From Oopsacas minuta (taxonomy: Eukaryota > Animalia > Porifera), in assembly GCA_024704765.1 (NCBI GenBank), contig JAKMXF010000310.1, positions 1,044,967-1,108,966 on the forward strand: 64,000 bases of DNA. Reading direction: 5' to 3'. The position numbers and the translations under genes are program-made. Positions 916-56,029 of this stretch are shown piece by piece; position 1 is the stretch's first letter; every line of letters starts with the position of its first letter. The notes below the pieces were generated by a model. That model was not told the origin of the DNA. It did not search any database and saw only the letters and a program-made list of their open reading frames with translations.

Positions 916-1151
916 TTGTCATCCAATAGTTGCATAAATAGAATCTGATCAAATCTTGTTGGTGCATTGATAGAATCGAGTAACTGTAGTCTAATTGTTC
1001 GAGGAATAGAATTGTTTGGCTCAGAGGCAATGTTTCTGTATAAGAACGTTCCCAGAAAAGATTGATAATCATCTATTCCAGCCTCTCCGGTAATAGTCAC
1101 ATTGGTAGAATAATTCCCAGAAACAAGTAAAGGAGGAAAACTCGATTCAAA
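916..1151 (-). CDS. Host gene exon J (phase 0->2): FESSFPPLLVSGNYSTNVTITGEAGIDDYQSFLGTFLYRNIASEPNNSIPRTIRLQLLDSINAPTRFDQILFMQLLDD(aa)
   Basis: Acceptor atcttttccaacag and donor aa|gtaagc; 236 nt; overlaps ORF 912..1100. The gene probably continues beyond the left edge. Confidence 0.9.
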
Positions 1152-3431
1152 CTGTTGGAAAAGATATTCAATAACATGTGATACAATAAATATCTAATTT
1201 AGCCTGTGCTTAATTTTAATTAAACTAAAGCAAAAGGAATGTTGAAAAAATTAAATTCTACAAAATAATCCAGTTCAGCAAGAAATTGTTCAAATTGGTA
1301 TAATATGATCGTGTTATGATTAGATCAGGGCTCAATTCATTTCTTTTAAGGAAAGACCAAAAAGATATTCGAGGTAAGTTTCATGGACTAAATTGTATTT
1401 TTCTAAGCCTAGATTGAGTTTTGTGATGCAGGTTAGAGTTTTAGGTTGCAGCTGTTCTCAGGATTTATTCTCACTTATTTATTATATGATCGTAATATTC
1501 ATGATGAACACAAAGGAAGGGCCGAGTTCGCCAGAAATCGGCTCTCGATTGGTTCCAGGTTGAGAAAATTTGGTCCGGGTTGGTCTGGGTTGGTGCAAGT
1601 TGGGCTAAGATTCCCTACCTTGTTGAGAAATTCGGTTATGTGCCTGAACAACAAATTGACAACGAATTTGATCTTCGTGTTGTGATTAATACAGCATACC
1701 TGTATTAATATTTTGTTTCCGAATATGAAATTTCAACACATTGAGACCTCAAGGTTAAATAATTGCACCAAAGTTTGTGAATTGAACAAATTTAGGGAAC
1801 AAGTTAAAACTATTACCTAAAAAGTTCAAACGGCCATCATTGAATATTTAATCGAATATTTTTGTAAAATATGAATTAAATAAATTTAATGCTAACATTG
1901 TTTAAATTTGTTCTTGTACTTCACACTCAAGATAAATATTTTTAACGCTAGATCATTCGAAAATTCTCAATATATACAAAATGAACAGAAATGAATATAT
2001 TCATCAAAAATTTATGAATTTTCAAAGAAATGATTTGAAGATCTGTTCAGAAAGCGTTCTAAAGAAATGTGCATTTAAATTTATAATTAAAAATAAATTT
2101 CAACATGGAGTCAAAGTCCGAAGTGTTTAAGCCCGCCCTTTTCAAGCACTTGTCGACTGATTTATAATCAAAGTACGTAACTCTCTTGTATGTATACTTA
2201 TAGAAGTAACACAATAAGCTTTCTTAAATGTATTATTTTCAATATATCAGGGGTTTCCAAAGAATGGCGAATGAGATAAGCTGAACTTAACTCTTTGTCA
2301 AGGGCTTGACCTTGTACTTGGACTTAAGCCCGTTAGAAAGGGGTGACCCAATGCCTGACTGACTCAATATGAATGAATAGAGCTGGAGGACAATAATTCT
2401 ACGAAAACATGAGTGTTTGCACAAGTCAATATGACGTCAGGGGATTAATTGAATAGTCCTAACTCCATTAATATATAAGATAGAATAATACTAGCAATTG
2501 AGTAATGAGAGCAAGGTACGTTTTTCAAATTTTGAGAATTCGAAAAATACATCCAACAATAAAGTTTGGACGCACTTACAAATTATCCCAAATGTTTAGT
2601 TAAGTTGTCATGATGTCACGGCATAACTAGAATACTCCCTTACACCATTTTGTATAAGAGATAGAATAATACTAACAATTGTTGAAATATAGTAAAAAGG
2701 ACAGGGTTTTACACAACTTATTTGAATCGTCATAATTTTACTCACCTTTATTTTACTGTTCCGACTATACTTTAGTATAGTGGCCCAGTATTGAAATGGT
2801 TGCCTATATGGCGTAAGAAATATTGAAGATATTCGTAAGGTCTGAGCAGACACCAAGTGCCACTATTTCACACTGGTCAAACTTTTGTCTGGCCTCAAGC
2901 AAAAAATTATGAAAGGAAACCTGCCAAATTTTTCACACCATTCGAAAGAGAAAAAATCTACACCTTCGTACTCCTCTAGAATTTATATTGGTTCCAGTTT
3001 TTTGCTGAAAGTATTCATTATATAGCATTATGTCATCGGTAATAATTCTATTGTTCTTAGATGTTAAATATTTATTAGTTAAACAATATGGATTCATTGA
3101 ATATCTAAGTTTAACAGTTGCTTTAATTATTTTATAATGTTTACGAATAAAATATTTTTCAAATTAATAATGAATAATTTAAAAGATATATATTTCCCCG
3201 AATATATAACCTTTGAATAATCGTAGAAAATTGTTCCAAACAGCAAAAGGGGGTAATTCAATACGCTGATTCCGAATTTGTACCGATGAAATCTTCTCCA
3301 GTATTCCCTTTTACTAATATTATTTAGTCAACTGATAAATAACTTTTACAAACAAATTGAATATTATAATAACTGGATAATCATAGTAAATAGTAAATAT
3401 ATCGTTAATGTAGTCCTTCGCAGAGCGAGGA

Positions 3432-3626
3432 AAAAATATAAAATTACAACCTGTTTCCGACAGCTTAGTCTATTAATTAAATGTTTAAAAAGTGGCACTA
3501 TTAATTGGAGGCACTATATGTAATGAGATTAAAACCTACCTCCCTTGGTACTTACAATTAATAGCACTTTTTAAACATTTAATTAATAGACTAAGCTGTC
3601 GGCACAGGTTGTAATTTTATATTTTC
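3432..3626. mobile_element. Long-arm foldback element (family A)
   Basis: Inverted arms of about 62 bp (AAAATATAAAATTACAACCTGT...TTAGTCTATTAATTAAATGTTTAAAAAGTG). Other copies at about 4235-4385, 20535-20715 and 24950-25115. Confidence 0.75.
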
Positions 3627-4731
3627 ATATTTTTATATGTGTACACTCCCCTGGCCAGACCAATAGTGTTCAGAGCACAAAGTTATACTCAAAATTACAC
3701 ATAATCTCATAAGGGTAGATTTAAGTTAAATATTTCCTGCAAGACATTACGACACAATTATCCCACCATCTATACTACCAGCAAAAATTTATCCATAATT
3801 TCTTGACCAAAATACATTCTTAAGATTCACAAAGAAATTCTTCAGATATAAGCTCTTCAAAAATTTGAAATCACTCTCAGCTTTCCCACAAATTAAAGAA
3901 ATATACGCCACTATCCAACCATAATGGCATCAAAAATTGGTCCGAATAATTAATATAATGTGTTACGTATAAGACTCTGCCTTAACTATAATTATTTTAA
4001 GTAAATTATTTAGAAATGTATTAATAAAGTTGTTTTTCAATAGGCTTGAATAATACAGAAAAAATGTAATATGGATTCAGTTAGATAGATTGAATATCTA
4101 AGTATAATTAACGGTAGCTTGAGTAATATATATTATATTTATTATTAAAATATATTTCAAAATAACGATGGATAAATAATATATAGGCAACCATTTCAAT
4201 ACTGGGCCACTATACTAAAGTATAATCGTCACAGTAAAATATATAATTACAACTTGTGCCGACAGTTTAGTCTATTGCTTAAATTTGTTTAAAGTGGCAC
4301 TATGTGTATTTGGTTATATTTAATTTTATAGTGCCATTCAACAAATAGACTAAGCTGTCGGCACAAGTTGTAATTGTACATTTTTGCTCGCTACGCTTGC
4401 AATTTATTGTAAAATTAAATAAAACATTATAATATTGTCAAATTATCGAAATCTCACAAATGAAAAATGTTGCCATGTCATCATTACTCTACTATGGTGA
4501 CGTCATTATTATCCTAAGAAATGTATCCCATTTAGCATCTACTACATTTCATCAAATGCAAGTACAGTATGTCCAATAATTATTGCAACACATCATTATT
4601 TCTATTTCAACCACTGCTATAGTTCTAGTTGATAAGTAGTAGTTACTGTACTAATATAGAAAGTTAATTGGTATCTATTTGAAGATAAATCTGAGTAAAC
4701 ACAATGGGATTATATTTTTTGCTAATGAGGA

Positions 4732-4757
4732 TGACGTCATTATTTATGATGACGTCA
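4732..4757. promoter_or_regulatory. Two tandem CRE-like palindromes (TGACGTCA) about 80-100 bp upstream of the transposase ATG
   Basis: TGACGTCA at 4732-4739 and 4750-4757, within a GATGACGTCAT direct repeat. Function not shown. Confidence 0.4.
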
Positions 4758-4832
4758 TCATTTAGTACCTTTCATCATAAATTAGAAAATTCTCTTACCT
4801 TTTAGCTGAATAATTTAGCATTTAGCGTTGAT

Positions 4833-5816
4833 ATGGCTCAAGAGGTGATGAGAGAAAAGATCAAAACTCTATTGATTGGCGATAAACATACACCTACTGA
4901 AATCTCACGCATTTTAGATGTTGATCGAGGGACAGTTTACAGGGTTAAAAAAAGGCTCCAAACAAATATGACCCTTAAACACAAAAGAGGCGGTGGTAGA
5001 CCAAATTTACTCGGCAATTCAATAAAATATACAGCTACTCAGTTCATCAAATCGGATCCAGAGACTAGTGTACGTAAACTTACAACCAGGATAACTAAAA
5101 CAAAGAAACTGACTGTCAGTAAAAGTACAGTCCATCTTACTCTTCAGAAACTGAAATACTCTAAGCCATTTCCTGTCCAGATTCCATTGCTATCTGAAAA
5201 AAATCGTCTCTTCAGAATTGAATGGGCACAGAAAAACAAATTTAAACTGTGGTGTAGAGCTGTGTTTGCAGATGAAGCCTCTTTCTGGCTTAATCGTGGG
5301 AAGGTTCGAATGTGGACAAAATCTGGAAAAAAACGATCACAAAAAACTACCAAACACTCACCGAAAATACACATATGGGCTGCATTTTCGTCTTTCGGTA
5401 CCTTCCCATTGTGCATATTTCGTCAGAATTTGGATGCACAATTCTTTGTTAAGATCCTTGAATGGCATCTTCTTTCGCAGGCTGAGGCTTTCCACGGAAA
5501 TAGATGGTTTCTCGTTCAGGATAATGATCCAAAGCACCGTTCAAAATTAGCCCAACAATGGATCTCAGAAAAAATGCCAAATAATGTATTTCAATGGCCC
5601 AGTCAATCACCAGACCTTAATCCGATAGAAAATCTATTCGGCTGGTTGAAAAATCAAGTTGTAAAACAACATGCCAAATCACTAGCTGAGCTTGAAAAGT
5701 GTATCCAAACAATTTGGGATTCTCTCACACCCGAATTTTTGGAACACTATTGGAAGTCTATGAAGCGTAGATGTCAGATGGTCGCAGAAAACGATGGAAA
5801 TAAGATCAAATATTAA
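4833..5816 (+). CDS. Tc1-like transposase, 327 aa
   Basis: N-terminal HTH with GRP motif and second HTH. Catalytic motifs VFADE, QDNDPKH and WPSQSPDLNPIEN. 35 residues lie between the second D and the E (counted from the codons). Confidence 0.97.
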   Translation: MAQEVMREKIKTLLIGDKHTPTEISRILDVDRGTVYRVKKRLQTNMTLKHKRGGGRPNLLGNSIKYTATQFIKSDPETSVRKLTTRITKTKKLTVSKSTVHLTLQKLKYSKPFPVQIPLLSEKNRLFRIEWAQKNKFKLWCRAVFADEASFWLNRGKVRMWTKSGKKRSQKTTKHSPKIHIWAAFSSFGTFPLCIFRQNLDAQFFVKILEWHLLSQAEAFHGNRWFLVQDNDPKHRSKLAQQWISEKMPNNVFQWPSQSPDLNPIENLFGWLKNQVVKQHAKSLAELEKCIQTIWDSLTPEFLEHYWKSMKRRCQMVAENDGNKIKY

Positions 5817-6589
5817 TCTTTAGTGTATTCTCAACAAGTAGACATAAAATTAGATCATATACTTTCATATTTATTGTTTCTGGGTTACGCTAGGAAATCT
5901 CCCTAGTGTTGCAATAATTATTGGACATACTGTATTATTCTATCTCATATACAAACGGAGTTACAAGTTCTGTTTTCAGATAATAAGTTTCAGCTCAGAA
6001 AATGAGCGCTTTGCTGTTGCATTAGTTCTCATCAGTGACAAATATATACGCATTGATAATCTGGCCCTGCTCACCAGACCCTGACTACTTGGGGCTCCTG
6101 ACGAAATCTGAGAAATATGTGCACAGTGGTTTATTCGCTTCTATTAGGGGAAATTTTCATATTTAAATCTTGTTAATGTATATATTGAGAAAGATTAGAA
6201 ATATGTAGGAGGTGTATCCAAATCTACAATTGCTTTTTATCTGAATCAACTTACATGAGTGTTGTACTATCTCAAAGTCTCAACAAATTATGTTAATTTT
6301 CTATGCTTAAAATTTGTGATGATAAAGCATAATTAAAAGTAATATAATGTGAATAATGCGAACATATTTTGTTGTGAACAAAACTTTGTCGCAATTTCTC
6401 GTACTATTCAGGATACTACACACATGACTGACTACCTAATAAAACTACTCTATAAATATTTATTCAGCGAAGTTCAGGGAAACCAAAATAATACCAACAT
6501 TCCATTCTATACTTTTGGTTACTATGGTATGTCAAGCTAAATGTTACTATGTTGATGTAATGTTTAACTGAACTATTATTCACAAGTCC

Positions 6590-7330
6590 ACTTTCATTCT
6601 CGATGACACGAGTTTCGTCAATTTGTAGATTCAAGAAATTCATCAGAGTAGTGACACTTTCAATGTTCTCTTTTTGAGATAGCAATGCGATTGGCTGGTT
6701 GGAGAATCTAGAATTTGGGTATTGATTAGACCAGATAAAATTTCCTTGATAATCTTTCAATTCAAGAGGAGAAACCATAAACAAGAGAAAATGTGAACGA
6801 TCACGAGCTATTTGAGATCTAAGATTAGGCACACTGTGACTTTCCAACCCATCTACACCATGTTTAACCATAAAGTTGAGCGGGTACAATAGGGGTTCTT
6901 CAATAGATTGTATAGAGTGTGATGCTACGTCACAAGAGATTTACTATGTTGTCAATGTAGTTAACTATTACTCCAATTGGTTTTGATACTGATGGGTAAT
7001 TGGAATGGAGGTATTAGAGCTGTACGAAAATTACGAATTTTAGACCAACTGGCTGATTTTGGCTGGAGTTTCACTACTTGTAATATAGTCCTGACGCTTA
7101 AGAACTATTTGTTCAAGATTATTTTAGAACTGATCTTGGGCATTGCTTATCTAAGCCGAGTACACCTCAAATGGTGGTTTTTCACATCTTTTGAGAACGT
7201 TAGTATTGTTAGTCGATTTCAAGTTTTTCTCCAATTATTCTACTTGCCAAATTGACATCTACTTCAGCATTTCGATTGCCCTGTTTAGTATCCAGAAATA
7301 TTTCATTTACTTCATGAAGTGTAAATTACA
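6590..7330 (-). pseudogene. Transib/RAG1-like DDE transposase fragment
   Basis: The open stretch (about 6935 to 6590) encodes VKHGVDG...HS, F.VSPLEL and IWSNQYPNSRFSNQPIALLSQKE. These match the Transib/RAG1 core around the first catalytic Asp. A decayed upstream region extends to about 7330. Confidence 0.7.
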
Positions 7331-7599
7331 TTTTACAGCTTTGTATGCTATAATTTATGTGAAATAATTTATATACACTAATTTAGGTTGAAATATATAT
7401 TTATTTTTGTAGTTGACAAAATATATCACATTCCTATACAACATATCCGAATCACAATATTATGCTTCATGCAAGATTGGGATACGATTCTTCGATAACT
7501 AACACATTGCCTAGTTACAAGTATTCGTTATTGAAACAAGATACTTTTAAGAATATCCTATAAAGTCATGAATTATAAGAAACGAAATAAATTTGAATA

Positions 7600-8242
7600 T
7601 TTTGGAAATTAACTATGACGTCATAATTTTCAAATGCTAACTCATTCTCAAAATCTGACATGCCAAAATAAATTGTCTTTAGTTAAACCCCAGTAGCCAA
7701 AATTCAGCTGAAAATAATTAAAATTGTTGAAGTTATAGCCTACTGGAAATATTTCCCCAAAATAACCCACTGTGATATGTGAAAACTAAGTTGTCTTTCA
7801 GTGAAGACCTATAATACGTATTTTATATAATACCCATTATACGTTTAATCTACAATTTTTGGTGACTTAACTTCTATTTGATCGATTTCTGAAATAGACA
7901 TTTAGCATGAAAACAGTGGTTATCGAACTGTTAATGAAAATCTCAGCTTAGTTGACCAAATTTTAAAATACTTGATAATTCTGTGATGTATACAAGTCTA
8001 AAAATGTGAAGTCTGGTTTTTCGAGATTAATCTATACGTATAATACGTTTAATAGGTATTATACGGTATACTCGTATTAAACAACTTAGTATGAAATATG
8101 ATTAATCACTGACAGAGATTGAAAATGTTAAAATTGGTATCTACATATTCTATTACACCTCAGTAGAAGTAAAACGAAATATCAGGCACGTAGTGCCGAG
8201 TATATTCTGTCGCACAGCGACGTAGCAAGTGAAGCGTGCTAG
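7600..8242 (+). mobile_element. Helitron 3' portion (H1-related)
   Basis: GTCGCACAGCGAC hairpin 8209-8221, then CTAG|T 8239-8243. The left boundary is approximate. Confidence 0.6.
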
Positions 8243-8523
8243 TTATAATTAATTCATATAGATTTTAACATCATTGATCCATCTAATCATATTTATTAGG
8301 GTGAATCTTGATGAGTTTAGAAATTAACAGCCATAAGAGTGGTTGACATTCCTCTTTGGGGTTGCTGAAAATTTCCCTGCGGTTGTTAGCAACCCTTATA
8401 CTTCGGACTAGCATCTCCAGTAGTCCAGGGGTTGCTGACAGTAGCTATAGCCTTGGGGTTGCTAACAATCCCATAGCTACGCATATGCAAACAGCCCTGA
8501 CTAAAAATTAGTGCTATGGCATG

Positions 8524-8977
8524 CAGAGGCGCCAAAACTAGAGGTGGAGGCTGGGTTTTGACCCACCCTGATATTTTGAGGGTGGGTTTTACCAATTCTT
8601 AGTTTGTGAATTAATTAGGTCAATATGTATATAAATCGTAGTCAATACAGGAATCCTTCGTCGTTTGCGGTGGTTATGTTCTTGAAAATTTTTAACATAT
8701 ATATATACAGTTGAACCCGTTAATACGAATACGAACGGACGGTCAAAATTTGTTCGCCTTATCCGGAGTTCGTATTAACCGTAGTAATATCAAATGAATA
8801 CAAATGATAGGGTCCTGATTTTGTGGAATTTTTTTTGTTTTATTCGGAAATTCGTCCTAACCGTGTTCGTATTAACGAGAGTCTACTGTATGTAGAAATT
8901 ACTTACAATTTCATGATATCTATTTGAGGTTCAAATGTTTCCACCCACCCTGACACAAATTAATTCCGACGCCAACG
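8524..8977. mobile_element. hAT-like MITE containing a nested Tc1/pogo MITE
   Basis: Perfect 8-bp direct repeat ATGGCATG on both flanks; TIRs weak. A relative lies at about 35330-35790. Confidence 0.6.
8708..8888. mobile_element. Tc1/pogo-type MITE
   Basis: TA flanks; TIR CAGT(T/A)GA...CGTTAATACGAA. Confidence 0.75.
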
Positions 8978-9267
8978 ATGGCATGTATAGGGTAAGATTG
9001 TTTTTACTCCTCAATTTAATCTCATCAAAATCATAAGTCTAGAGGAGCGCCGGCGCTCCTAGATAATTCATTGTTGGCAACCACATAGAAGGAATGCTAG
9101 CTACTTTTCTGGTAGGAAGTTCAATACAAACTTACCCAATGGTGTGCTTTCGATTTAAAGTATGTTCGAATCAGGCGCTAGTTAATATAAATGTGACAGG
9201 AAATATTAGTTGCCCGTTGAAAATAGGATAAATATAAACACTATGAATAGTTTGATGAGAAACTTAC

Positions 9268-9499
9268 ATAAATAAATTCCTGATATAAATCAAGTGGTCC
9301 AATGAGTGTAATAATTGCGGAAGACATAATGTAATCCCCATCACAAGTAATGTCGTGGTCAAAGAGAATCAATCTTGGAAAAATAGAAACAAAATTGGCT
9401 CCTTCAGTATATTCAATTGTAGCAGGTGGAGAGATAACAACTGGAGCATTATCATTATTCCCAATCAAAATAACGGTATAGTTCAGCTGAGCAAGAAAT
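9268..9499 (-). CDS. Host gene exon I (phase 2->0): (I)FLAQLNYTVILIGNNDNAPVVISPPATIEYTEGANFVSIFPRLILFDHDITCDGDYIMSSAIITLIGPLDLYQEFIY
   Basis: Acceptor ...atcatgtctag after a long pyrimidine tract and donor tat|gtaagt; 232 nt. NDNAP linker; lies inside ORF 9241..9606. Confidence 0.9.
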
Positions 9500-9603
9500 C
9501 TAGACATGATTTGATAAGAAGGATAAAAGATTTCAAAGATATAGGAAGAATAAATAGACTTGTTTGAGCACGAGAAAGAATATAAATAAATATTGTAATG
9601 AAT

Positions 9604-9659
9604 CACCTAAATCTTAAGACATGCCAAGGGTTCCCCTGGCATGTCTTAAGATTTAGATG
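9604..9659. repeat. Near-perfect hairpin: 27-bp arms, 2-nt loop, 2 mismatches
   Basis: CACCTAAATCTTAAGACATGCCAAGGG-TT-CCCCTGGCATGTCTTAAGATTTAGATG. Confidence 0.9.
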
Positions 9660-9776
9660 GTTCATTTTTAAGTGCCATAATTATTTTGATGTGCCATGTA
9701 ATATTTGTTTGGATCCGACCTTGACTCACTGACTCAGTATATATTGCTCAACAAATTATGTTTTGTTAACCGAATA

Positions 9777-10386: not shown

Positions 10387-10697
10387 TATTTGATAAACCG
10401 AATCTTATCGATTATCAAAATTCGTTACTCTGGTAATGTCTCTCTCTATAAGTACTACGTAATGCATAACTAGTTAGAAGATTTTCACTCATTCTAAATT
10501 TTTGATAATTTTCTACACTAGCTTTAGTTAGAGAAACTTCTTCCAAACCTGGCAACGCTATTGCTGTGGATAATTCCATAAGTTTATACGGGTTTTTTAA
10601 TGTAATTTATCATTTTAGGAAAAAAGAAAATAACACAAAAAGGATGAAATGGTACTTACAGTTCTTAGTCGAATTGGTCAGAAAGCGTATTGAATAG

Positions 10698-11344: not shown

Positions 11345-11503
11345 ATTCCATCAAAAACTTGGATATTGATAATCCTCCAATTCGGGCAAGAGAATTCAGA
11401 ATCGTTAAAAAGTAGAGTTAAAGAATCGATCAAAGTGTTGTATTCAGCCACAGTCCGAGATCCATTGAAGTAAACTGAAGAATTTTGGGATTCCATAGAT
11501 ATT
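11345..11503 (-). CDS. Host gene exon H (phase 2->2): (G)ISMESQNSSVYFNGSRTVAEYNTLIDSLTLLFNDSEFSCPNWRIINIQVFDG(at)
   Basis: Acceptor cccattactttttag and donor at|gtaatg; 159 nt. G..TVAEY..L and R.I.I.VFDG motifs. Confidence 0.88.
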
Positions 11504-21734: not shown

Positions 21735-21879
21735 CCACTTGTACCAGTTTCACCAAAGATATACTCTCCCAAAAAAAGGGCAGGGTAAACAGTCAATCTT
21801 AGAGACTCAATAAAATGAACTTGATTATCATCAATATCAGTAAGCGTAAGGTTGGAACCAAAACGTAAGATGTTCATTC
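21735..21879 (-). CDS. Host gene exon G (phase 1->2): MNILRFGSNLTLTDIDDNQVHFIESLRLTVYPALFLGEYIFGETGTS(gg)
   Basis: Acceptor ttttgcattttattcag and donor gg|gtgagt; 145 nt. L.L.DxD motif. Confidence 0.88.
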
Positions 21880-27168: not shown

Positions 27169-27314
27169 CTGATAGTGAGTAAAGCACGACGAAAATTATC
27201 AGTAGAAGATGGTCCGACTAAATTCAAACATCTTCCAGAATAGAATTTTACAATATTAGACTCAAATATGGTTGCATTGATGAAAGAGTAGATGAATCTA
27301 CTTTCGATACAAAC
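27169..27314 (-). CDS. Host gene exon F (phase 0->2): VCIESRFIYSFINATIFESNIVKFYSGRCLNLVGPSSTDNFRRALLTI(ag)
   Basis: Acceptor tatctttttatttag and donor ag|gtttgt; 146 nt. L.L.G.S...F..AL..I motif. Confidence 0.82.
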
Positions 27315-29861: not shown

Positions 29862-29951
29862 CATAGCAGATGAAATATTCAGTCCCACGTCAATATCCGA
29901 AATAGAGACATCATTCAAAAGTATCTTTGAAACATTTCCTTCTACAAATAC
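29862..29951 (-). CDS. Host gene exon E (phase 0->0): VFVEGNVSKILLNDVSISDIDVGLNISSAM
   Basis: Acceptor ttttcctaatattgttag and donor atg|gtaata; 90 nt. F.EG and DxD...SSA motifs align with exon I. Confidence 0.88.
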
Positions 29952-31709
29952 CTAACAATATTAGGAAAAATAAAATAAAATAGAATAATACATCAAAATA
30001 AAGTAAGTTTGATATATTCCACATGCTGAATGTTATTAATACTAGCGCTTCACGACTTGAGGTGACTGCACAAATTTTTAGCAGTTGTGATATCGCCCAT
30101 TGGACTAGGTACCTCCGAATAGCTGCTTCGCAGCATTCATATAAGTAGGACAGAAGAACACGGCCAAGACTTACCAAAACACCATGTACTCATTTAAATA
30201 ATGACTGCAGACACTCGAACTCGGGTCCAGAAACTTGGTTCTATTAAATGAATTTAAGTGCGATATTTCAAAAGTGGCACGTTTGTGTCCGGATAAATGA
30301 ATTACATACTTATAGAAATATATTTCATCAATCCCAAAAATACAAAATTTTAGTAGAAAAGTGTGAAATTTGGTGCTAAGTAAGCATTGTTGGGCGTAAA
30401 TGTATCCATCTTTGGTACACCTAAAATGATAATACTACAGCTAAAATTTCTCACTATGACTTATTCTATATTACACCTATAGATATATGGTCATATCCAA
30501 ATTACATCATAGTGAGTAAAGATATTATCTCAAAATGTATTATTAGGGTATGGGAAGTCGGGTATAAATTAGGTGTTGGATTGATGTATTTGGCGAAAAC
30601 CTTTTGAATTATATTGAATTCTTATTAAATATACCCTCCATGGTACATCAGACTTGCCACTATAATGTCAAACTTAAATATTTTGATTAAAAATAGAATT
30701 AGAAGACTACAGGGTGTATAATTTTTCTTCTTTCGAAAAGGGGGGACATTTGTGGTTCCTTTCCTTTCATAATTTCTGCTAGAGGCCAGACAAAGTTTGA
30801 GCAGTGTGAAGCTGTGGCAATTGGTGTCCGTCGATTAGCAAAGGCGAGAAGCACACCTGACGAATATCTCAAATATTTTCACCATCATACAACACCTTAA
30901 TTCTATCCAGTTTTGGCTGCAGGGCTTTCACGGAGAAAAGGAAAATATAGGCACCCATTTCAATACTGGGCCACTGTACTAATACTTATGGCAATTTTCA
31001 TAAATAAACTACAGCAAATTAGATATATATTTATTTATTTGTCTCTGATGAGAAGTGATCGGTCTAAAGCACCTTTGTCCAGCAAATCTAAAGACAAAAC
31101 TTCGAGTTCTCCACTTACTTTGAAGATTCCGATTTCACGGGATTACTCTGTTGGTAAACTAGCGAAAGGGCTGAATTCTCCTGAAAATGTTACAGAGGAA
31201 GTGCTGGATTCTTTCACAAACTCAGAGCTGAAACTCATCATTCATTGTGCGAAAGACAGGGAATTTCCTTTCGTAAACCAAAATATGAGTGGAATGAATT
31301 CCATACATTTAATAATCTAAGAATTGTATATAAATTTTGCCGTTCTCTCCGTGAGTTGATTGAATTTGACACTTTACAATAGGGCAGTGGGCCGGACCGT
31401 GGACAGGGCGTATATCATTTGAGGGCCGCGGTTAGAAAATATCGACCCGCATGCAACCCTGGAACTTCCCATAGAGTTGTACAGGACAGGGATGTGCTCC
31501 GATAATAAATTTCCAGCTGCACCATTACTATGTTACCGTTATTCCGTTACTTGATTTTCACATTATGGAGAAAAACATTGGAATGTATTGTTAATCTTCA
31601 TGTATCCCCATTCCCACTCACTCTTAGAGGTTCGTTTCTATGGAAATCAGAGAAAGGCGAACAAAATTTCCCCAGCTTATAGAGGTTGCACTGTATTATA
31701 TTAAATAAA

Positions 31710-32030: not shown

Positions 32031-35000
32031 TCCCAAAGAGCTAATTTATCAGATTTGACAAATTGGCTTCCAAATTCAACTAAGTATCTATAGTGGTGAT
32101 ATACAGGCAGGCGGCATCCGACGCTATTAGCGAATACGCCGTTAGCAGTTTAATCTATTAGCGGATAACATCTTGTGTCTTGTTTTGTTGTTTGCAACAC
32201 TTTCACTCTACCATTCGTGATTTCGTCATACACGTCAGCAGTTTGGATAGAGAATTTTTCACAAATCTCTTTTTGAATAATTAACATATTTTACATTGTC
32301 AAAAATATATTAAGTTTGTTTCTTCCCCAATAAATTATGACATATCATCCTTACGAATACCTCAATACATTTTCAGATTTGATACATGGTAAGACAAATA
32401 TGTTATTGGCTCATGGAGTAAGATTTGTTAATTTTTACTACAAAGTTAACCGAATACTGCCGAAAATGTGCTATTCATGAAGTCAAAAAGGAGCTGAAAT
32501 ATCGATATGGGTGAGGGAATTGGTTAAAACGAAGTGGTAAATTAGCGTGTTTCCTTTTCGTTACGAGGGCAACACTTCGGACTTAATCGGTTAAAGTCGT
32601 GATGTACAGCTCGATTAGTGAATCAACCATGTTGTGAACTCACAACTATTGTCCATTTTTTATATTGATGATATTTTAGTAGCACTGTTTGTGTGATAAG
32701 TATCTATAAATTAAGGAACCTAACCACACAATTCTCATTAATATATAGTCTTGCAGTCCGTAATCTTGTCGTTCTCGGTAATTTCCAGTGACGTAACCCC
32801 TGCAAACAGAGAGGGATTCCTGGATACATTTGTGTATTCTATGTAAATAATAGCATTGAAGGAAATGATAATAATAACATTGTAGTTATAGACTAGTTGC
32901 GTTTCCATAACTTTTTAATTATTTAAGAGAATATCAAATATAGGTGCAAAAAGGAACATTGTACAATGTAGTTTATATGATTATAAACCATTACTATAAG
33001 CAATTGCTTGATAAAATCATAAGATAGAAATATAGAAATATTCAAGCAACCTAGGTAGTTACAGTTGATTACTTAAGTTCGCGAACTTAAATCTTAGAAA
33101 ATTAGTTAGAACTAAACTTCTTAGTGAATACGGCGGCAGAAAGCATTAGTGCACTTAGCCATAGGACGTAAACGCTCCACCAGCCAATTTAAGTTAATTT
33201 TGTATGAATCGTTGTGGAAATAGCACAGGAACTCAATCCTTAGGGTATAGGACATTTTACCAACATTATTACAATTTTGAACATAATTGATGGGACAAAA
33301 AGTTCGAGACATGGCCATACAAACAGGGTTATTTGATTTTAAATCATTGATTTTATCATAATGTACAAATAATGTTAATTTTAGTAGGTAAACCGCCCGC
33401 CCGAAAGATATTTGAATTCCTCTGTAAAATCAGATTAAATAAATAAATGATGTAAATAAAGAAAATCGGATTGTACGTATTGATGTTTCAATATAAATAG
33501 AGATTTTTATCAACCCTGCAGTGATCCGATTTTCAGTCCCAAAGTGTAGATTTCGTTCTAAATAAGTTCCACTTTTACCAACTTTTGCATATTAGCAACT
33601 GTATGAGAAACAAACTCACTATAATTGAACAATTTAGATCGATTTCAAGGCTATAATTAGAGGATTTCAAAAGTAAAAATCTAGCTTGATTATCTAGTTG
33701 CGAATTTGTTTAAATAGATATGACAATACTATACTATAAATTTTAAGAATACGAATAAACTAGTAAAAATATAATTCAAGGGCGAAAGAAGGTGGTTAGG
33801 CCATAGCCTGACCATTTGCGCTGCCATAAATTTCACCATTAAATTCCAGCAATTAGTTGGGACACATGATCCGATTCGGGCACTTTTGAGAATGGAATGT
33901 GTCATATTCCTGTAATGTCAAAGAAAAATAATCCAAACATGGTTACGGTGGCCCCGATAATGAAAAGAAATTTCAAGCTGATATGAATATATGCATAGTT
34001 AATTGATTAGACTTAAGTGAAATATGAATGTAAATTGAATCTTAATCAATTTCTATCACATTTGGGCTCAAAATGAAGGAATAAAATCAACATATCTATT
34101 CCAAGGTTTGGCGAATATAAACATCTGCTAAAATATCCGACGACATAGGCGCAACTAAGGCCATTTGGGTGGCCATATGCCTACCCTGGAATTGAGTGCC
34201 CACCCAGATTTGACTCTACCGTAATACAAAAATTATAGGGAACGGGCATGACGTCATCTTTGTACCCCTTGACTCATAGCCTAGTTGCGTCATTATCCGA
34301 CGATATATCAGAAAATTCCCCGATACGATAAATATGGAAAATATCTGAAAAACAACGAAAAATATCGTATATATCAATTAAAAATCTGAAACCAAAATGT
34401 CCCTTTCTCCACTATCAGGGATTTTTAAAAATTGATTTACTTTCTCAAACGAAGTTGAATCATTTTGTATGCGATATTCGTAATTAGCATAAAAGGAAAT
34501 TAATGAATCAAATGACTCGAATTCGGGCACTTTTGAGTTTTCTCAAATAGATAATAAATATCCATGTATGTGACCATAAAATTGAAAGGAAATTTCATTC
34601 AGACTAAAATATCTGCATAGAAAAACGATTAGACAAGGTTTGGCACTGATATATCAGTTATGCAAAAGGTACATTCCAATATTATATCGAAAAATATCCA
34701 AATAGTCAATATTGATTTCCGCGAGATTTTTGAGAAACTTTCCAGATATATATCGATATTTCCCGATATTCAGAGTTATGGCCTAAGTACGGCATCCGAT
34801 GGCTTCAGTTTTTATCTACGTATTCAAAATTTAATGTCATAAAGACATAAACAGTAATGGGTTCAATTCATGAAAGGAATTGGGATTTATGTTTCAGGTT
34901 CCATTCCCATTCAGAATGGGAATGGGAATTAAGCCCTTGATTCCTGGAATTTAAGGGCTGAGAATGGGAATTAATTCCAATTCTAAAGGAAATTGATTGG

Positions 35001-38333: not shown

Positions 38334-38336
38334 AAC

Positions 38337-38451
38337 CTCTGTTGAAGGAGAAATTGTTAATCTTGGAGGGTTATCATTCGCATCGGCAATTCCGACTATT
38401 AGATATATCGGATCACTGAAGAATGTACCATCAAATATTGATACTGATATC
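38337..38451 (-). CDS. Host gene exon D (phase 2->0): (R)ISVSIFDGTFFSDPIYLIVGIADANDNPPRLTISPSTE
   Basis: Acceptor tttttttcttatag and donor gag|gttatt; 115 nt. Contains the cadherin-type DxNDNPP linker. Confidence 0.88.
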
Positions 38452-41573: not shown

Positions 41574-41644
41574 CTCCGATCTAGTAGCACGGGTTCTTGT
41601 TCAGGGGATGAGAGATTGAGAGAAAATGTAATATTACGTAACAC
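41574..41644 (-). CDS. Host gene exon C (phase 0->2): VLRNITFSLNLSSPEQEPVLLDR(ag)
   Basis: Acceptor ctctttactttag and donor ag|gtaata; 71 nt. Continues YQT|VLRNITF...EP in frame. Confidence 0.85.
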
Positions 41645-47541: not shown

Positions 47542-48016
47542 ACTATATTATTAATCCTCAATTATCGTTTGTCTGTTTGTTTGTCTGTTTCTTTGTCCGT
47601 TGTCAGGGAAAGGATTCGCGATATGCAATTTTGAAATTGCCGCATAACTATGTATTTATCGTGTTTATCAAGGAAGTAAATAGAATTCAATAAACATTTA
47701 ATAAATATATCGAACACGCTGAATCCGATTTTTACACTTTTGGATTAATCATAGTAAATTTATAGTTGTTTTTATGAATATAAAGGAAACATATCGCAAA
47801 ATCTCAATATTTACGTAAATACTTGCTCTCAACGGCTACAAAGGGGGTTTATCTTACAAATAATTCAATAATATATATACCATATACGTATATTGTGAAT
47901 TACATTGTTCTATATATATATTTATTATAATGATCAAAGGCAGTCAATTCAAAGAATAAAGGATACCTCGAGGCGAATGCGCCGAGTTCATCGCGAAGCG
48001 ACGAGCTAAAGGCTCG
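47542..48016 (+). mobile_element. Non-autonomous Helitron family H2, near-complete copy
   Basis: 5' (A/T)CTATATTATTAA followed by a (TTTG/TCTG)n tract. GC-rich 3' end TCGCGAAGCGA...GGCTCG|T. Confidence 0.7.
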
Positions 48017-50497
48017 TACGTATAAATATCTGTACAACAATTAAAATTCTTGAAATTTATAGGTGTTAACACACTCGTTCCAGCCTACTTTCCAAGATTT
48101 GAAACCACTATTAGTCATATTGATGGCCAGCATCAAGAGTACAATATTTTGGGGTCTAGGACAAATCCTTGGATAAAAATCGATCAAAATATCACCAATT
48201 GGACCAACGCCGTAGAAAGCAGATTTTGGAATAATCAAGGGTGATCAAATCTCACATATATTTTGAACGATATACACCGTGAAGTTAGAAAATACAAGAT
48301 AGCAGTCGATCGATGGCAGCATTCGTTTGTTATCACCCACAAAGGCCAGCTGTCCAAACAAAGAGGAAAGTATTTCAAACGTATATATAACTTTCTTAAA
48401 TTAAGTTTTAAGCATTTTCATTATGATAGACATTTTCAGCATTAAATTTCCAAGAATTTGATGGCTCATTTTTATCATATTCCGACCACTTTTGAGAATG
48501 GAATGTAGTACATTCCTGCCATGTCAAGGAGAAAACATTTTTTCAAGCATGGGAATGTGGCCCCTATAATCAAGGGAAATTAAATGCTGACTACGAATAT
48601 CTGCATAAAAAACCGATTCAGCTTAAATATGAAGGTGAAGTCAATTACAATTAGGGCATTAGGATAATTCGATTAAAAATCGTACGATCATTATCGAGAA
48701 CATTTTTGAGAATCGGAAGGAGATCGTCGATCCATTTGAAAAAGTGGGATCGGATCGATAACATGCTCAAAAGATGCCGATCCTTCCAAATATCTACATG
48801 AAGTAATATCTCGTTAATACGTACACGAGCGGACCTTCGAAATTTGTACTTCTTAACCGGCGCAAAATCAATTGAAAAACATTGTAGGGACTTGGTTTTG
48901 AGTCACTATTTGTTCGTTTTATCCGGAGATCCGTATTAACCGTGTTCGTACTCAAAGAATGACGTATTTTACTAAATAAATGCTTACTAGACACATATTT
49001 TGACACATTCCTAAAAAATTTCATCATAAATGGTTGATAATTTGTTGCGCCACAAATATGCGATAGATTTATTCGGGGAAAAATGCACCTACTCTACAAT
49101 ATAGAACTCACATAAAATTTGCTCAGTCGGCTAACATATCACTATCCTAAAATGCACAAGTTACTGTTAGGCATTATGTATACTATGCTATGGTTTTGGA
49201 TATTCAAAAGTTATACATGGTAATTAATCTATGGGCTATGCGGGTGAGGGGACGTTAGGAACCTCTGAATAAGATCTTAATTAGAAACTGAAGTAACAAA
49301 GTTCAATTTACGAAAGTATTCTTTTAATTGGTACATCATAACAAATTAAAACAGCTCGTCTCAGTTGCCATGGCGGGGAGTCCAGTTTGAATCTTGCCTC
49401 CCGAAGCTCGCAAAGTATTTCCTTTTGCCCACACGGCCCAAGGGCCGATAAGAAAAGTCGGTCGCCTGTATCTCTTAACTATCAATAGGAGGTATTAGAA
49501 AATACCCTCAATCAGGAGCTATGGTCAGGCCTACACCTTAGCAATAACCTATCAAGGCCTACACATCAGCACACATGAGAGAATTATACAATAGAATATT
49601 GGGAATTCAGAATCTTAGTTTAGGAACGATTCAATGCAACAAATTTCTACTGGACAAATTCAGAATTTTATTCATGATAATATTCCGATTTCTCATACAA
49701 TAAGAGTTCGAAACTGAACTACAGAAGAACTCGTTAATCTGTACACTAAAGGATCGTCGAGAATTGTACCCATTTCGAGTAAGTATTTACCGAAGTACAG
49801 CCAAATTTGTTCAAATTAATTAATACACGCCAGGGTATTTCTACATGAATTAAGAGGGGGTATTTTGCTCCCCCTGAACTATGGTCATGTTATGCAATTA
49901 GCTCCAAATTATGCCTCCCTCTAATTCATGCAACATTGATTAGCCCACCTTGAAAAATTCTCATAAAAAGCCCCTACACGCAGTGATAACTGCGTAGTCG
50001 GAAATTGAGCTCCTTACTGTGTTGTGGATATCACTGAGGCTGAGCGGGAAAATGCTGGGGAATCAAAAATTGTACTCCTTATTCGTGTTCGTATTAAGGA
50101 TGGTATTTGATTAAGGATAGTAAGGATAGTATACGTACTCTAGGGTTTTACGCTTATTTTATTTCTTGGTGGTTATCCAAATTCAAATATAATGTTTTGA
50201 GAATCTAAAATATAATTACTTGTATTATTCGTGTTGGTGTTCGGTTGAGAGGTTAGTTCGTGTTTTAGTTTCTGTCCTTCGTGTTGTGTCGATGTGAAGT
50301 TTGAACACGACGCTCGGTCTACTATGTATGTATGTATCAATATTCCTGTTTAACTAAATTTCAGATGGCAGCTCGGACAGATGTATGGGCAGACTTACGG
50401 ATCGATGCACGTAAGTCGCAAATCATAAATGCTTGTACAAAATAGTAGGAATGTATGATGAAAATAAGATATAAGATAAAGTTGCTATCAAAATTAC

Positions 50498-50541
50498 CGT
50501 TTGATACACTCCAACCGTAGCTTCACCAGATATCTGTAATA
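50498..50541 (-). CDS. Host gene exon B (phase 1->0): (V)LQISGEATVGVYQT
   Basis: Acceptor tctctttatttag and donor acg|gtaatt; 44 nt. Carries the L.I.G.A....Y motif also seen in exon J (VTITGEAGIDDYQ). Confidence 0.85.
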
Positions 50542-51949
50542 CTAAATAAAGAGACAGGAATTAAATCCACATTGTTACACATATACATTAATCAGTTAAT
50601 AACCCTGTTTGGATTGGTTTTTCGGTCATATTCCATCACACGAGGGAAGATACTTGTAGATAATTTTAAAGCGATCACTCGAGGAAAGATAGATAACATA
50701 ATACACTCCCCGGTACTCAACAAGCAACATTCAACTTCACTTAATAGGGACACCGGATAATCGAGAAAACAGCTTAATTGGGACACGTCTCCAGGAACAG
50801 AATCATTTCCATAAAGTTAATACATTCGCAAAAGGTACGGAAAAGTGGAGCTATACAAAAATTCTGACTAACAAAGGCATAATAATAATATTGTAAAAAC
50901 ATGTCCTGCCGATAGACTGGTATTGCAGCTCAGGGTTAGGTATTTTGTTTTTTTCAGAGGAAGCACCCCCCCTACCCTCCGTGTAAATGGCGTAATGCAC
51001 CGGACCCGACTAATTTTAAACTCATGGATCCGATAAATATTTCAGGATATTCAATATTTTTGGTCCCCTAGTGTAATTCATGTTCTCTCCTCAAATCCTA
51101 TGGATGAAATCCGAATAATTGTCCTACAAATTCCCCAGATTAACTTTTGAAACGAAATCTTTAGCATCAATTTGAACCTTTATGATAATAAGGGGTTTAT
51201 TCTATTAAGTGGTCAAATATAAACGGGATCCATTTAAAATTGTTATATATGCATATTCAGCGTAATTTTCATTACGCTGCGATCGTTCTAAGAAAATGTA
51301 ATTTTGATAATTAGCGAAAAATTTGTGTAATATTTCTGTGATAGAATTTTTAGGCCAGCTAAAACCTTACTACAGCAGTACCCAACTATTTTTAACCTAT
51401 GGACTCCCTATACTAATTTACCACATTATGTGGTCCACTGGTGCTGTCCGTCCATGCGCCCCAGGTTGGGAACTGCTGCTACTATTACTATTTCAATAGT
51501 CCTAACCATTATCTATGGAATAATAAGAATAGTAAAAGAAAATCACGAATGTAATTTATATACTCTATGAACCACGGTGGGTCATGCCGTTGCGAATAAG
51601 TACAAAAATTTTCAGTTAATACAACAAAGTTGACTAAATTGAGAAAAATCCGCTGATCGGGTGGAAAACTCCATCAAAAAGAAATAGTGTTAATCTGGGC
51701 AGATTCTAATACACTAGATAGATGGATAAATTTCGACAAATGGCGACAAAATTGGCGCTCAAATGAATATTAAATTTGGTGATAAATTGCAGCATACGAT
51801 CCGCAAATTCAATCTATGTACTCTGGGTGGGAATGAATGCATCATAGAGTGTGAAATTGCTTTAGAGGGCTGCGACCGAAATATAGAGAAACACAGCCGT
51901 TGCTAATCAATGATACTAAAATATTACTTCTAAGGTGAATTTCGGACTA

Positions 51950-52560
51950 CGGTTTATCGGGCAAAAGCCTGGAACCAATGAAATGTACGAGACAGCACGA
52001 AATAATGTACTATGGGTAGGTGCAGTCACCAAGTAAAACCTGGATCGTATAGTGTCGTTTCCAGCAAAGTCCCTATGGTTTAGACGTACAAATGAGATCA
52101 TAGGCGTAACTATTTCTGAAAAATAAGATAAATCTTGCATCTAACCTAAACTGGAGGAAGAAACCTGTCCTTGCAACCTCGAACTCTGGCTTAGCTAACT
52201 CGTCTAACCGAATTCTGTGTTGACAGGTATACTCCGAAACTTTCAGGGCAAATTCAGGCATCAAATGAATTGAACTCTTCTGATGCGTAACAAACCCAGC
52301 CTTTCCTTTTTTGAATGTATTAAACCACATTGCTTGTTTGTCCATGGACCTTTAGAGAAACATATCATATCTACAGTTTTGAGACGATTTTCAAAGGCCA
52401 GATACGAAATTCCGTCTTCACATATTTTTAACCATGAATCTGCCAGAAACTACTCCTTTTTAACGGAGTGACCACTAACAGATTTGGGCATCTTACATGG
52501 TAGTTCCACTGGGAAATTCTGGATTGGACAGGTCGGGACCTGAAGTACCTATATCATAGG
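51950..52560 (-). pseudogene. Decayed hAT transposase N-terminal region (TTF-type Zn finger)
   Basis: GFVTHQKSSIH resembles F..HE.S..H, and MISFVRLNHRDFAGND resembles I.FL..Q.LAFRG.D. Multiple frameshifts. Confidence 0.5.
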
Positions 52561-53199
52561 AAGACTACTGTCTATATTTCATTGGTTCTAGGCCTTTTCG
52601 CGACAAAAATCATTATATAAGGCTGGTTAGTACCAGAATCTCTAGCTCTCTTTTCAGTCATTCAGTTTTACGTAATAAATACACTAAATATTATCAATAA
52701 ATATCAGAAATACTTATTTAATTATTCTTCCACCGGGAGCGTTTCAAGAATCAATTATAATCCAGCAGATTCCGTATAATCCTTAGTAATTTAGAAAATA
52801 GAAGCAAATTATTCAACAATTTGGGTGAATTAATTTCTAACATATCTGAAGAAGATAGTCTTAAATTATGACATGTTATAAATTCAATATTTTCTTCAAC
52901 TTTTTACAGCCAAAATATTTGCTATATTCAAACTTATCCCGGTTCTATTGCCTCAAACTGGAGTGGCGGCCACCCTTGCACCCCTAATAATACACCCATG
53001 AATGATATATATATATACAGAAATTCAACTATTTAGGTATTCGTGAGATGCTATATTTCATATTCATATTTTCAATTTTCAAACATTTTGTCATATACAA
53101 TCACAACAAGATTGCATATTTAGCTAGGGATTGAAATCATTGCTGCATTGGAGAAAAATAGCAGCGGTTAACCGCTTGTATTGATCCAAGTTTAACCAT

Positions 53200-55500
53200 C
53201 CCTATATTAGGTCAATCATCCACATCCCGCGCGGGGAATGGGGAATCCCATTCGGTTCAAGAGGGATAGGGATTTTGTAGCCAAAGAGAGACCAGCCCTA
53301 ATGGAAATAGGGATCCCAGCGGATCAATGCTAGAGGAAAACGGACGTTTTAGCAGTTCTACGAGCAAGAAGCAAAAAACATCAGCCACCCTAGTGATTCG
53401 AGTAGGGGAAATAAATTGGAAAAGGTGGTTAGGGTAAATTCAAGAGGACAGAGAAGGGGCCGATACCATTATGCGAGTGGCACAATAAGCAGACATTTGT
53501 ATGTTCAAATGCGCAAAGTCGGGGCATATCGAATGGCAATGTTCGTCAAGGAGATGCTAAGGTTGTGGAGAGGAGGACACTTGCAAACGATGTTGGAATG
53601 CGGAGACAGCACAAACTCGCATCGATAGGGGAGGTAGTTCAATGAAGGCGAGAGGAAGAAGGGTACTTCCTAAATGAGAGGAAGAAATTGAAAAAGAGTA
53701 GGCAGAGATGTTGAGAAATGAAGTATGCCGACAGTCTAATTCTTCATGGGGTTCTAATGTTGTGCTTGTAAGGAAAAAGGATAGTAGGTGGAGGATTGCA
53801 ATTAATTACAGGAGGTAAAAGGGATCAGGAAGAAAGATACCTATAGCCTCCAAAACATACAGTAAAATTTCCAGTGGAATAGGCTTGGTTCGTTGAATAT
53901 GAAGTATGTGTACAACAGTGCGACATTTGTGTACCTTGGATGGTTTCAGGGTATTTTAACGTACTATTCGAGTTGTTTTCGACAGTATTTTAGCTGGGAT
54001 TAGTGCAGCGGTTCCCAACCTTTTTCAAACCTGGACCCCTTTACCAATTTTGACACATTCTGTGGACTCCCTCTCATAAAAAGAAATAGATCCTGTGGAC
54101 CCCCTGCTGCCGTCCGTGGACCACTAAGGGGTACATGTTCCCAAGGTTGGAAACCGCTGGATTAGTAGATAAGAAGCCTTGGATGTTGTTTTAACGCATT
54201 ATTTGAGTTGTTGTCCACGGTATTTACCATTAATCAATGGATAAATAGCCTAGAGTGTTGTTCCGGTGAATTTGTACGCACTAATCGAGTTCCAGGAGGA
54301 AACTTCAACAATTGATCTCTGTACAGAGACGTCACGCTAGCTTTGTTCACATATGTCATACTTTCCCATTTTTAGCAGTCCGACAGATATTTGATGCTGA
54401 AACTTGCTGTGCTGTCGTGTCCTGAACTATCAATGGCTTTAAATTGTGAATATAAAAAGTTCAGACCCCAACTTTCCCAAAGTGAAATGAAAGAGCAGAA
54501 TATTATGTTAAGAATGTTGTGTGTCCTCCAGGTTCTTCGAACAGCAAGTGAGAATAACGTTTTACGGTAACGCCAATGTAAAATTGAGGATAGGCAAGTG
54601 TCATTTCGGCGTAATTAAGGCATCTTTCTGGGCTGCAAGTGACACAGAGAGAAGGCTTCTTGTTTAGTAAGCAGTCGAGAAGCCCAGTTATTGTCCTAAG
54701 CCTAAGATTGGGCACTAGAAGCGGCCACAAGCAAGTGGAGAATGTGCAGAGGGGAAAGTCATCCTCCTGACGGATCACAATCTTTCAAAATGGATAAGGA
54801 ATTAGAGGAGCCCAAAGCACACCTATGCAGGATGGCTAATGAAAGTAGAAGAAATTTTGTACGAGATCCGCTATCGGGCAGCGTCAATAAATGCATTGCC
54901 AGATTTTTCAGCAGCAAGAGTTTGCGACTGGATGAAGGATGAACACTATAGAAGAGTTTGGAAATAAGGCGTACAATTTAGCCGATCTGAAAAGGTGGCT
55001 AGGCACGTTAAAGAGAGGGAAAAGGAAAGATATGGTCATTCAGGGTACACTCAAACAATTGTTGGATTCGGGATTCGTGGTCAGTGGTAGGTTGGTTGAG
55101 GAAGGTCGCTCCAAGATTAAGAATCATAGACAATGTCTAGCCTATCAACAACAGGGTATTGGTAACAAAGGCTACAGTTGGAATTCGGATAACTCATTCG
55201 ATTCGGAGACGCACTTTGGCCAGCTCGAACTTACGAATGCTACGAAGACACTATTTTTGGATATGTCGAGAGACGCTTAGAGCATACTGTCGGACCTGTC
55301 TGGTTTGCCAAAGGTCCAAGCCAAGTAGAACCTAAACAACCGTTAAACCTTTAGAAACAGTTGACAGTCAGCATGGGGTAGCAGTATCGATGGTACGCTT
55401 TCAAGGGACAAGGATTGCCCGGCCCAATGACGAGACAGAAATGAATACGACAGATCAAGAAGTGCCCCTGGAGCGATGTTCCAAGGAGATGGTCACACCC
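53200..55500 (+). mobile_element. Decayed Ty3/Gypsy LTR retrotransposon internal region (no LTRs recognised)
   Basis: Two degenerate CCHC knuckles (about 53500-53600) and RT SSWGSNVVLVRKKDSRWRIAINYRR (about 53730-53820). RNase H ILLTDH...EIRYR...N..PD (about 54740-54910) and integrase Zn motif YCRTCLVCQR (about 55280-55320). Order is gag-RT-RH-IN. Confidence 0.85.
54006..54159. mobile_element. hAT (Charlie-like) MITE inserted in the Gypsy remnant
   Basis: TIR CAGCGGTT(C/T)CCAACCTT with TSD GATTAGT(G/A). Confidence 0.8.
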
Positions 55501-55920
55501 AAAGCCTCCTCAATAGGATAGTAAGAAAAACTCATGAAAATGTCTTGTAAATCCCACATAAATTCCCATCTGAGCGTCGTTGGAGGAACAAGAATTGTGT
55601 TAGGTATATCAGAACAAATTTAGGTTATAAGAACATATCGGAATAGGAACATTTTCTCAAGTTCCCACGATGCTCAAATATGCAATAAGGTTTATCACTT
55701 ATGGTTATTAAAGGCATTGTATTTCGAAGCAAAAATGCCTTGCAAGAAACATGGAATGTATGAATTCAAATGTTCTGATATATTGTAAATGCTTCTTGTT
55801 TCCCACATATTAGGGAAGAGTCAACTTCTAGAGATGTTGACAAATTTCCATGCATAAGTGAATTACAAGGAAAAATGAAAGATATAATATAATTATTTAT
55901 ATGATTTCTATATAGCCTAC

Positions 55921-56029
55921 CCCTTGAAGTAGAATTGTATATCTGAATGAGCCCGTCTACCAATTCCGTAGCTTGTAACTGTATTAGAGAAGAGTCAGAA
56001 GTATCTGTTTCAATAAAAATATTCGCGAA
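55921..56029 (-). CDS. Host gene exon A (phase 0->1): FANIFIETDTSDSSLIQLQATELVDGLIQIYNSTSR(g)
   Basis: Acceptor atatttttcttcag and donor g|gtaggc; 109 nt. The trailing g plus 'ta' of exon B gives V, yielding YNSTSR-V-LQISGEA, which fits the repeat motif. Confidence 0.8.

Follow-up and report, generated by a model that had tools for sequence, protein, structure and literature searches.

Ten small exons in the glass sponge Oopsacas minuta are probably the upstream part of a giant FAT-like cadherin gene that carries bacterial-type repeats

The window studied here is a stretch of 64,000 nucleotides (nt) of the glass sponge Oopsacas minuta, positions 1044967-1108966 of the 1.35-Mb contig JAKMXF010000310.1 (C310), with a G+C content of 32-40%. 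Its minus strand carries ten small exons that encode tandem copies of a repeat unit of ~140 residues. These exons are probably the upstream (5′) part of a single FAT-like cadherin gene of giant size, at least 174 kb long. An initial annotation of the window, made from its letters alone, had described a self-contained 55-kb gene. The exons instead run on into a giant cadherin exon downstream of the window, and from there into exons for EGF and laminin-G modules. The earlier interpretation had the kind of protein right, an early animal's adhesion protein with bacterial-type repeats, and the scope wrong; the family also has named members in other sponges.

The gene is hardly visible in open reading frames (ORFs). 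As had been remarked before, the long-ORF list of the window contains only scraps of it, with three minus-strand open pieces carrying repeat motifs, and a tblastn self-comparison of window pieces was too weak to define exons. Every AG and GT site was listed around pieces matching a repeat profile, and exons were queried singly. This independent rebuild gave ten exons between window positions 56029 and 916, called A, B, X, C, D, G, H, I, E and F in the order of the gene (Table 1). They measure 44 to 236 nt and sum to 1347 nt, or 449 codons, which reproduces the initial model exactly, down to its eight phase-matched junctions. All ten carry a GT donor, and an AG acceptor preceded by a pyrimidine-rich tract. 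The phases agree at A-B, B-X, X-C, C-D, D-G, H-I, I-E and E-F, and the three junctions named earlier (55921^50541, 38337^29951 and 9268^1151) have the GT donors, pyrimidine-rich AG acceptors and phases that splicing would call for. Exon X lies where continuity of the profile from B to C predicted an exon; it follows B in phase 0, its two leftover bases fit C, and the codon formed across the X-C junction encodes the conserved arginine of the unit. The exons encode about four copies of the unit, each cut into three or four small exons by introns of 1.8-10 kb, and introns exceed 5 kb at five of the eight closed junctions. Fourteen N-x-S/T sequons lie inside the exons, the number counted before, and on these motifs the protein may be glycosylated.

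To score the exons, two unit profiles were built without window sequence; the first drew on the giant exon, and the second, which is richer, on 213 units taken from sponge relatives and paralogues. In a 214-kb region cut into 11,360 six-frame pieces, the unit profile matches exons F (expectation value, E, of 4e-10), E (1e-5) and I (8e-5), and 47 of the 50 matches with E < 20 in that region fall on the minus strand. The best 8 of 4128 window pieces are all on the minus strand and stand in the unit's cyclic order of profile positions. Exons D, G and H rank fourth, fifth and sixth among the 4128 (E = 0.13, 0.29 and 0.62), and exon B has E = 1.9 within the window and 0.44 with a profile of bacterial repeats. 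By BLASTP, exon C matches many domain ends of the giant exon, with E down to 2e-4, and exon E matches the giant exon at 1.5e-5. Exons A, B, X, C, D, G and H keep near-invariant residues of the unit, namely the E of YxE, DxD, Y, R, DG and NDxP. We infer that all ten exons are real, with A, B, X, C, D, G and H on weaker evidence than I, E and F, and exons A-H are presumably used.

The link to a cadherin came from the sponge's own genome. The assembly searched holds 61,460,524 bases in 365 contigs; it has been published as 61.46 Mb in 365 contigs (PMC5968619). Exons E and F gave weak matches there inside very long open frames, one of which, of 4177 codons, lies on the same contig and strand, 75 kb downstream. 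This giant exon matches Pfam Cadherin (PF00028) with 451 and 379 bits (E = 3e-138 and 1e-115) and Laminin_G_3 with 38.5 bits. With home-made profiles it reads, in order, as three units, 12 classical cadherin domains, laminin G, about five units, seven cadherin domains, three units, two cadherin domains and one unit, a total of 21 classical cadherin domains and 12 units. The donor of exon F joins in phase to a next exon at contig position 1038825 (window 916 is contig 1045882). From F through exons n1 to n11 to the giant exon, 12 of 12 successive junctions close, with GT-AG sites, compatible phase and introns of 0.25-16 kb. Unit-profile matches form an unbroken minus-strand series from C310:931915 up into the window (to 1056585).

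Further unit and cadherin exons lie 3′ of the giant exon (Pfam Cadherin, 144 and 50 bits), together with an exon for EGF domains, and pieces still further downstream have weak Laminin_G_2 and EGF_2 matches. Pfam Cadherin thus matches the gene in its giant and downstream exons, and the window exons encode the other kind of repeat. The gene also has the EGF and laminin-G modules of FAT-like cadherins. It spans at least 174 kb, about 0.3% of 61 Mb, between C310:1,100,995 and about 927,000, and its protein is estimated at 8-9 thousand residues from summed open segments, not from a curated model. The window exons provide exon-level coordinates for the upstream part of what is possibly one of the largest genes in the most compact sponge genome known.

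We then compared the gene with that of a related sponge. In the database, the giant exon is closest to ORFs of 4100-4230 residues on large ENA contigs, with 53-64% identity. On contig ctg83225 of the related sponge (ENA ERZ25072730; 35% G+C), 84 kb upstream of its giant exon were walked through called ORFs. Eleven upstream exons, window exon F and ten downstream of it, are matched there by orthologues that keep their order and are 45-72% identical. The orthologue of exon F is 54% identical over 80 residues (E = 6e-24), and has its CAG acceptor and GACAA^GT donor at the same positions. Two of the exons with orthologues score poorly against the unit profile (contig positions 1027857, E = 0.54, and 1038576, E = 2.5). 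Since such weakly scoring exons proved to be conserved, some credit passes to exons A-H.

The conserved parts of the ~140-residue unit are an early YxE, a DxD, the core 'ISG.A....Y..LL..L.Y.N...EP...R.I...DG' and an NDxP linker to the next unit. Residues E27, D44, D46, D131 and N149, plus a Y and an R, are nearly invariant in 36 aligned units. The NDNxP linkers noted initially are present in window exons C and E (ANDNPP and NNDNAP), the latter exon also having YTEG and DHD. An AlphaFold model of one unit (L018:7465-7926, minus strand; 36 aligned units) has a mean predicted local distance difference test score of 93 and forms a beta-sandwich with a single helix at 'Y..LL..L'. Foldseek and VIA-align found no close solved structure in the PDB, only generic immunoglobulin (Ig)-like relatives (a B4GALNT1 domain, cohesins, pilins and cadherins) with Z of about 9 or less. 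The best match, with 16-19% identity, is to a human B4GALNT1 domain that is itself a beta-sandwich (Foldseek E = 2e-5, VIA Z = 9.1); the cadherins rank behind it (Foldseek E of about 1e-3, Z of about 6.6). The newer Pfam families PF28399 (Ig_CLSTN) and PF28393 (Ig_Cad99C_N), which the Pfam copy used does not contain, have faint matches on the relatives' giant exon. A repeat that neither matches the Pfam copy used nor has a close solved structure would merit both a family model and a crystal structure.

In cadherins, acidic residues at the domain borders and NDxP linkers give rise to calcium-stiffened junctions. Because the unit has acidic border residues and NDxP linkers as well, similar junctions between units are suggested. 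The ectodomain would then be rod-like, with the acidic residues (E, DxD, D and NDxP) binding calcium and stiffening the chain. The EGF and laminin-G modules fit a FAT-like adhesion or polarity receptor, which might act in cell-cell or cell-matrix adhesion or in polarity signalling. By analogy with cadherins, the sponge protein would bind calcium, be anchored in the membrane and be adhesive.

The initial annotation had also likened the unit to the repeat of giant bacterial adhesins, and this likeness is borne out. A word search with four units returned bacterial tandem-95 repeat, VCBS, DUF4347 and cadherin domain-containing giants (E from 1e-100 to 1e-205, 25-32% identity across most of the query). 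Among their sources are Magnetococcales, Blastopirellula, Paraburkholderia and Bradyrhizobium, and several of the proteins have RTX (HemolysinCabind) repeats. In 19 bacterial proteins the sponge-derived profile detects 222 near-full units, 6-18 per protein, with up to 129 bits. In the other direction, a profile made from those 222 bacterial units alone matches window exons F (E = 1.2e-5), E (0.004) and I (0.0055). The bacterial tandem-95 repeat consensus, '...LTLTG.AT.A.YQAALR.V.Y.N.S..P....R.V.F.V.DG', aligns with the sponge unit. At the level of sequence profiles, matching in both directions, the whole unit is homologous to the bacterial tandem-95/RTX repeats. Existing models catch little of this: NCBIfam NF012211 scores 24.6 and 42.8 bits on units of the giant exon, below its curated cut-off of 90, and has no match in window pieces, and the Pfam models Cadherin_4 (PF17803), Cadherin_5 (PF17892) and Big_9 (PF17963) have none on 410 and 566 unit-only residues of the sponge gene. 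The window sequence is direct evidence of a repeat shared with giant bacterial adhesins beside classical cadherin domains in an early-branching animal. Such a side-by-side arrangement is relevant to the way in which animal adhesion proteins were put together.

The unit is also found in other animal proteins. The four-unit query matches 'protocadherin Fat 4-like' models of Dysidea avara (E = 1e-64) and Amphimedon queenslandica (4e-46), in each of which the unit profile finds 9-10 near-full units. The protein kind, which had been called uncharacterised, therefore already has demosponge models that carry the same unit. Giant 'P/Homo B domain-containing' proteins of amphioxus carry it in tandem, and in O. 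minuta it occurs at four or more loci, including contigs C210, C22 and C319. Its presence in amphioxus and in other O. minuta genes shows the unit to be an old animal building block. It is not a recent import, as it is cut by spliceosomal introns, is present at several loci of the genome and is found in Dysidea, Amphimedon and amphioxus. A literature search, limited to one library, found no paper on the unit in animal cadherins, and we know of no study of the amphioxus proteins or of those encoded on C210, C22 and C319.

Several observations weigh against the assignment of the window exons to the giant gene, or against parts of it. Exons A, B, X, C, D, G and H are individually non-significant against the unit profile (E 0.1-20). 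Scans with Pfam and NCBIfam find no match in window pieces, a silence attributable to the shortness of the exons and to a unit that is not modelled. Junction G-H does not close, so at least one exon must be missing between G and H, and the profile did not recover it. The walk along ctg83225 reaches record position 807,791, beyond which no ORF is called, 6 kb upstream of its exon F (the E-F intron of O. minuta is 8.1 kb); of the window exons it covers F. A 5′ end, signal peptide, transmembrane segment and cytoplasmic tail were not found; the EGF exon has no hydrophobic stretch of 21 residues, and the pieces downstream of it were only listed. The structural matches of the unit model are to generic beta-sandwiches, so a specifically cadherin-type fold or topology is not shown. 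The exon model was built from genomic sequence. Finally, the introns of 2-16 kb are 10-50 times the mean of 341 bp in the published O. minuta annotation, for which RNA-seq reads were mapped with a maximum intron of 5000 (PMC10280926). With that limit, introns of 5-16 kb would have no read support, and the upstream part may well be missing from the published models. A word search with a 121-residue frame around exon E gave no candidate sharing three words and is uninformative, as it sees only proteins of similar length. Runs of N, open in all six frames, lie at C310:1108967-1111005, 1113100-1114990, 1135000-1137960 and 981971-982790; the first starts just past the window and stands in the way of finding the gene's 5′ end.

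These points could mean that only I, E and F belong to a working gene, and that A-H, lying 5′ of the true first exon, are either decaying copies of unit exons or alternative exons in rare use. The low profile scores of A-H, the open G-H junction and the lack of cross-species support for these exons would all fit, as would a region rich in transposons. Out-of-order unit-like scraps in the C-D intron, at window 32741-32914 and 31146-31241 (both minus strand; profile 96-122 and 73-88), suggest that some relics exist; the scraps themselves may be relics of decayed unit exons or chance matches (E 13-16). Against this, the seven exons are all open; their GT-AG sites are good, and at six junctions the phases are compatible. 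The conserved E, DxD, Y, R, DG and NDNPP positions are retained, every exon sits on the strand of the gene and in correct cyclic order, and the equally weak downstream exons at contig 1027857 and 1038576 are conserved in the related sponge. We consider this reading unlikely.

A further possibility accepts the exons and changes their use: the 5′ part would be a fast-evolving array of bacterial-type units, cut by very long introns and used as whole-unit cassettes. The block A-B-X-C, 339 nt long, starts and ends in phase 0 and can be skipped without loss of frame. If cassettes were used in this way, one gene could supply a syncytial glass sponge with variable adhesive ectodomains, perhaps for recognising partners or telling self from non-self. 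We give this only a slim chance.

It is less probable still that the window exons are a separate gene for a unit-only secreted protein adjoining the giant cadherin gene. No transcript links the two, and a 7-kb intron lies between F and the next exon. Exon F, however, has no terminal stop and ends with a GTAAGC donor and two bases left over. It joins in phase to a conserved next exon, 12 closed junctions connect it to the giant exon, and the related sponge has its exons in the same order. Chance open frames in AT-rich DNA, bacterial contamination and recent gene transfer, to which the absence of Pfam and NCBIfam matches in window pieces and the bacterial likeness of the unit might point, are already refuted by profile E values down to 4e-10 with consistent strand and order, by an orthologue with conserved splice sites in a second sponge, by spliceosomal introns that interrupt the exons inside a 1.35-Mb sponge contig, and by the presence of the unit in demosponges and amphioxus. 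What remains best supported is the upstream part of a giant FAT-like cadherin gene, and with it the initial description of an intron-rich minus-strand gene for an extracellular tandem-repeat adhesion protein in an early-branching animal, here a glass sponge.

Table 1. Exons of the O. minuta gene in the window (window coordinates), its downstream landmarks and other unit-bearing loci (contig coordinates)
Feature	Position	Strand	Size and content	Acceptor	Donor	Remarks
Exon A	55921..56029	-	109 nt; mid-unit, profile ~31-68	TTTTTCTTCAG	GTAGGC	Phase fits B; profile match alone not significant
Exon B	50498..50541	-	44 nt; 'ISGEA...YQ' core, profile 81-95	CTCTTTATTTAG	GTAATT	Phases fit A and X
Exon X	41574..41644	-	71 nt; profile 96-113 ('L..ITF..N...PE..P')	TCTTTACTTTAG	GTAATA	
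Exon C	38337..38451	-	115 nt; unit end, 'DG', ANDNPP linker, next unit's start	TTTTTCTTATAG	GTTATT	Phases fit X and D
Exon D	29862..29951	-	90 nt; 'FVEG...SDID...SSA', profile 21-52	TAATATTGTTAG	GTAATA	Phase 0 on both sides
Exon G	27169..27314	-	146 nt; profile 53-103	CTTTTTATTTAG	GTTTGT	Phase fits D
Exon H	21735..21879	-	145 nt; 'TDIDD...', profile 30-64 and beyond	CATTTTATTCAG	GTGAGT	Phase fits I
Exon I	11345..11503	-	159 nt; profile 74-123, 3′ end 'VFDG'	ATTACTTTTTAG	GTAATG	Phases fit H and E
Exon E	9268..9499	-	232 nt; unit end, NNDNAP linker, next unit's first half ('YTEG', 'DHD', 'SSAIITL')		GTAAGT	Phases fit I and F
Exon F	916..1151	-	236 nt; unit's second half ('ITGEAG..DYQSFL...YRN.ASEP...R.I')		GTAAGC	2 bases left over
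Giant exon	C310:957416-969946	-	4177 codons, 12.5 kb, single exon; Pfam Cadherin and Laminin_G_3			
EGF exon	C310:931915-934464	-	Nine EGF domains, 153 bits			
Unit-bearing giant exon	C210:26088-43427	+	5780 codons, at least 14 units			
Other unit-bearing locus	C22:208954-237680		Same ~140-residue unit			
Other unit-bearing locus	C319:101546-103273		Same ~140-residue unit			

Mobile elements and stray frames were seen in and around the gene. The E-F intron holds an intact Tc1/mariner-type transposase ORF of 327 codons on the plus strand (window 4833-5816; DDE_3, 77 bits, and HTH_Tnp_Tc3_2). Upstream of exon A lie a mariner Transposase_1 fragment (window 61106-61492, minus strand) and a THAP-domain ORF (62839-63057, plus strand), and another THAP ORF is found past the gene's 3′ region (C310:925001-925909). 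The orthologous gene of the related sponge has an intron with transposon-like ORFs (ctg83225 record 823266-830125; L046:3267-10126; FLYWCH, MULE, and products of 855 and 495 residues). Two inverted copies of a 41-residue ORF, which is found on eight or more contigs, lie on either side of them, and all this accounts for much of the intron's 17 kb. Elsewhere in O. minuta, C318:133001-150292 has long open frames (1596-2216 codons) with a weak exon-E match only, which may be further cadherin genes.

The O. minuta gene can be set beside three kinds of known protein. Unlike the bacterial tandem-95/RTX proteins, it has introns, classical cadherin domains and EGF and laminin-G modules, and the scanned parts of it have no RTX (HemolysinCabind) match. 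The amphioxus proteins that carry the unit differ in having P/Homo B domains. About half of the O. minuta repeats are the ~140-residue unit and not classical cadherin domains, which may set the protein apart from human and fly FAT cadherins. The transmembrane and cytoplasmic parts of FAT were not found in the sponge gene, and its layout is unusual, with one 12.5-kb exon and dozens of small exons separated by introns of up to 16 kb. In overall architecture it is like FAT/FAT4 cadherins and the sponge Fat 4-like models: a giant tandem-cadherin ectodomain, followed by EGF and laminin-G modules.

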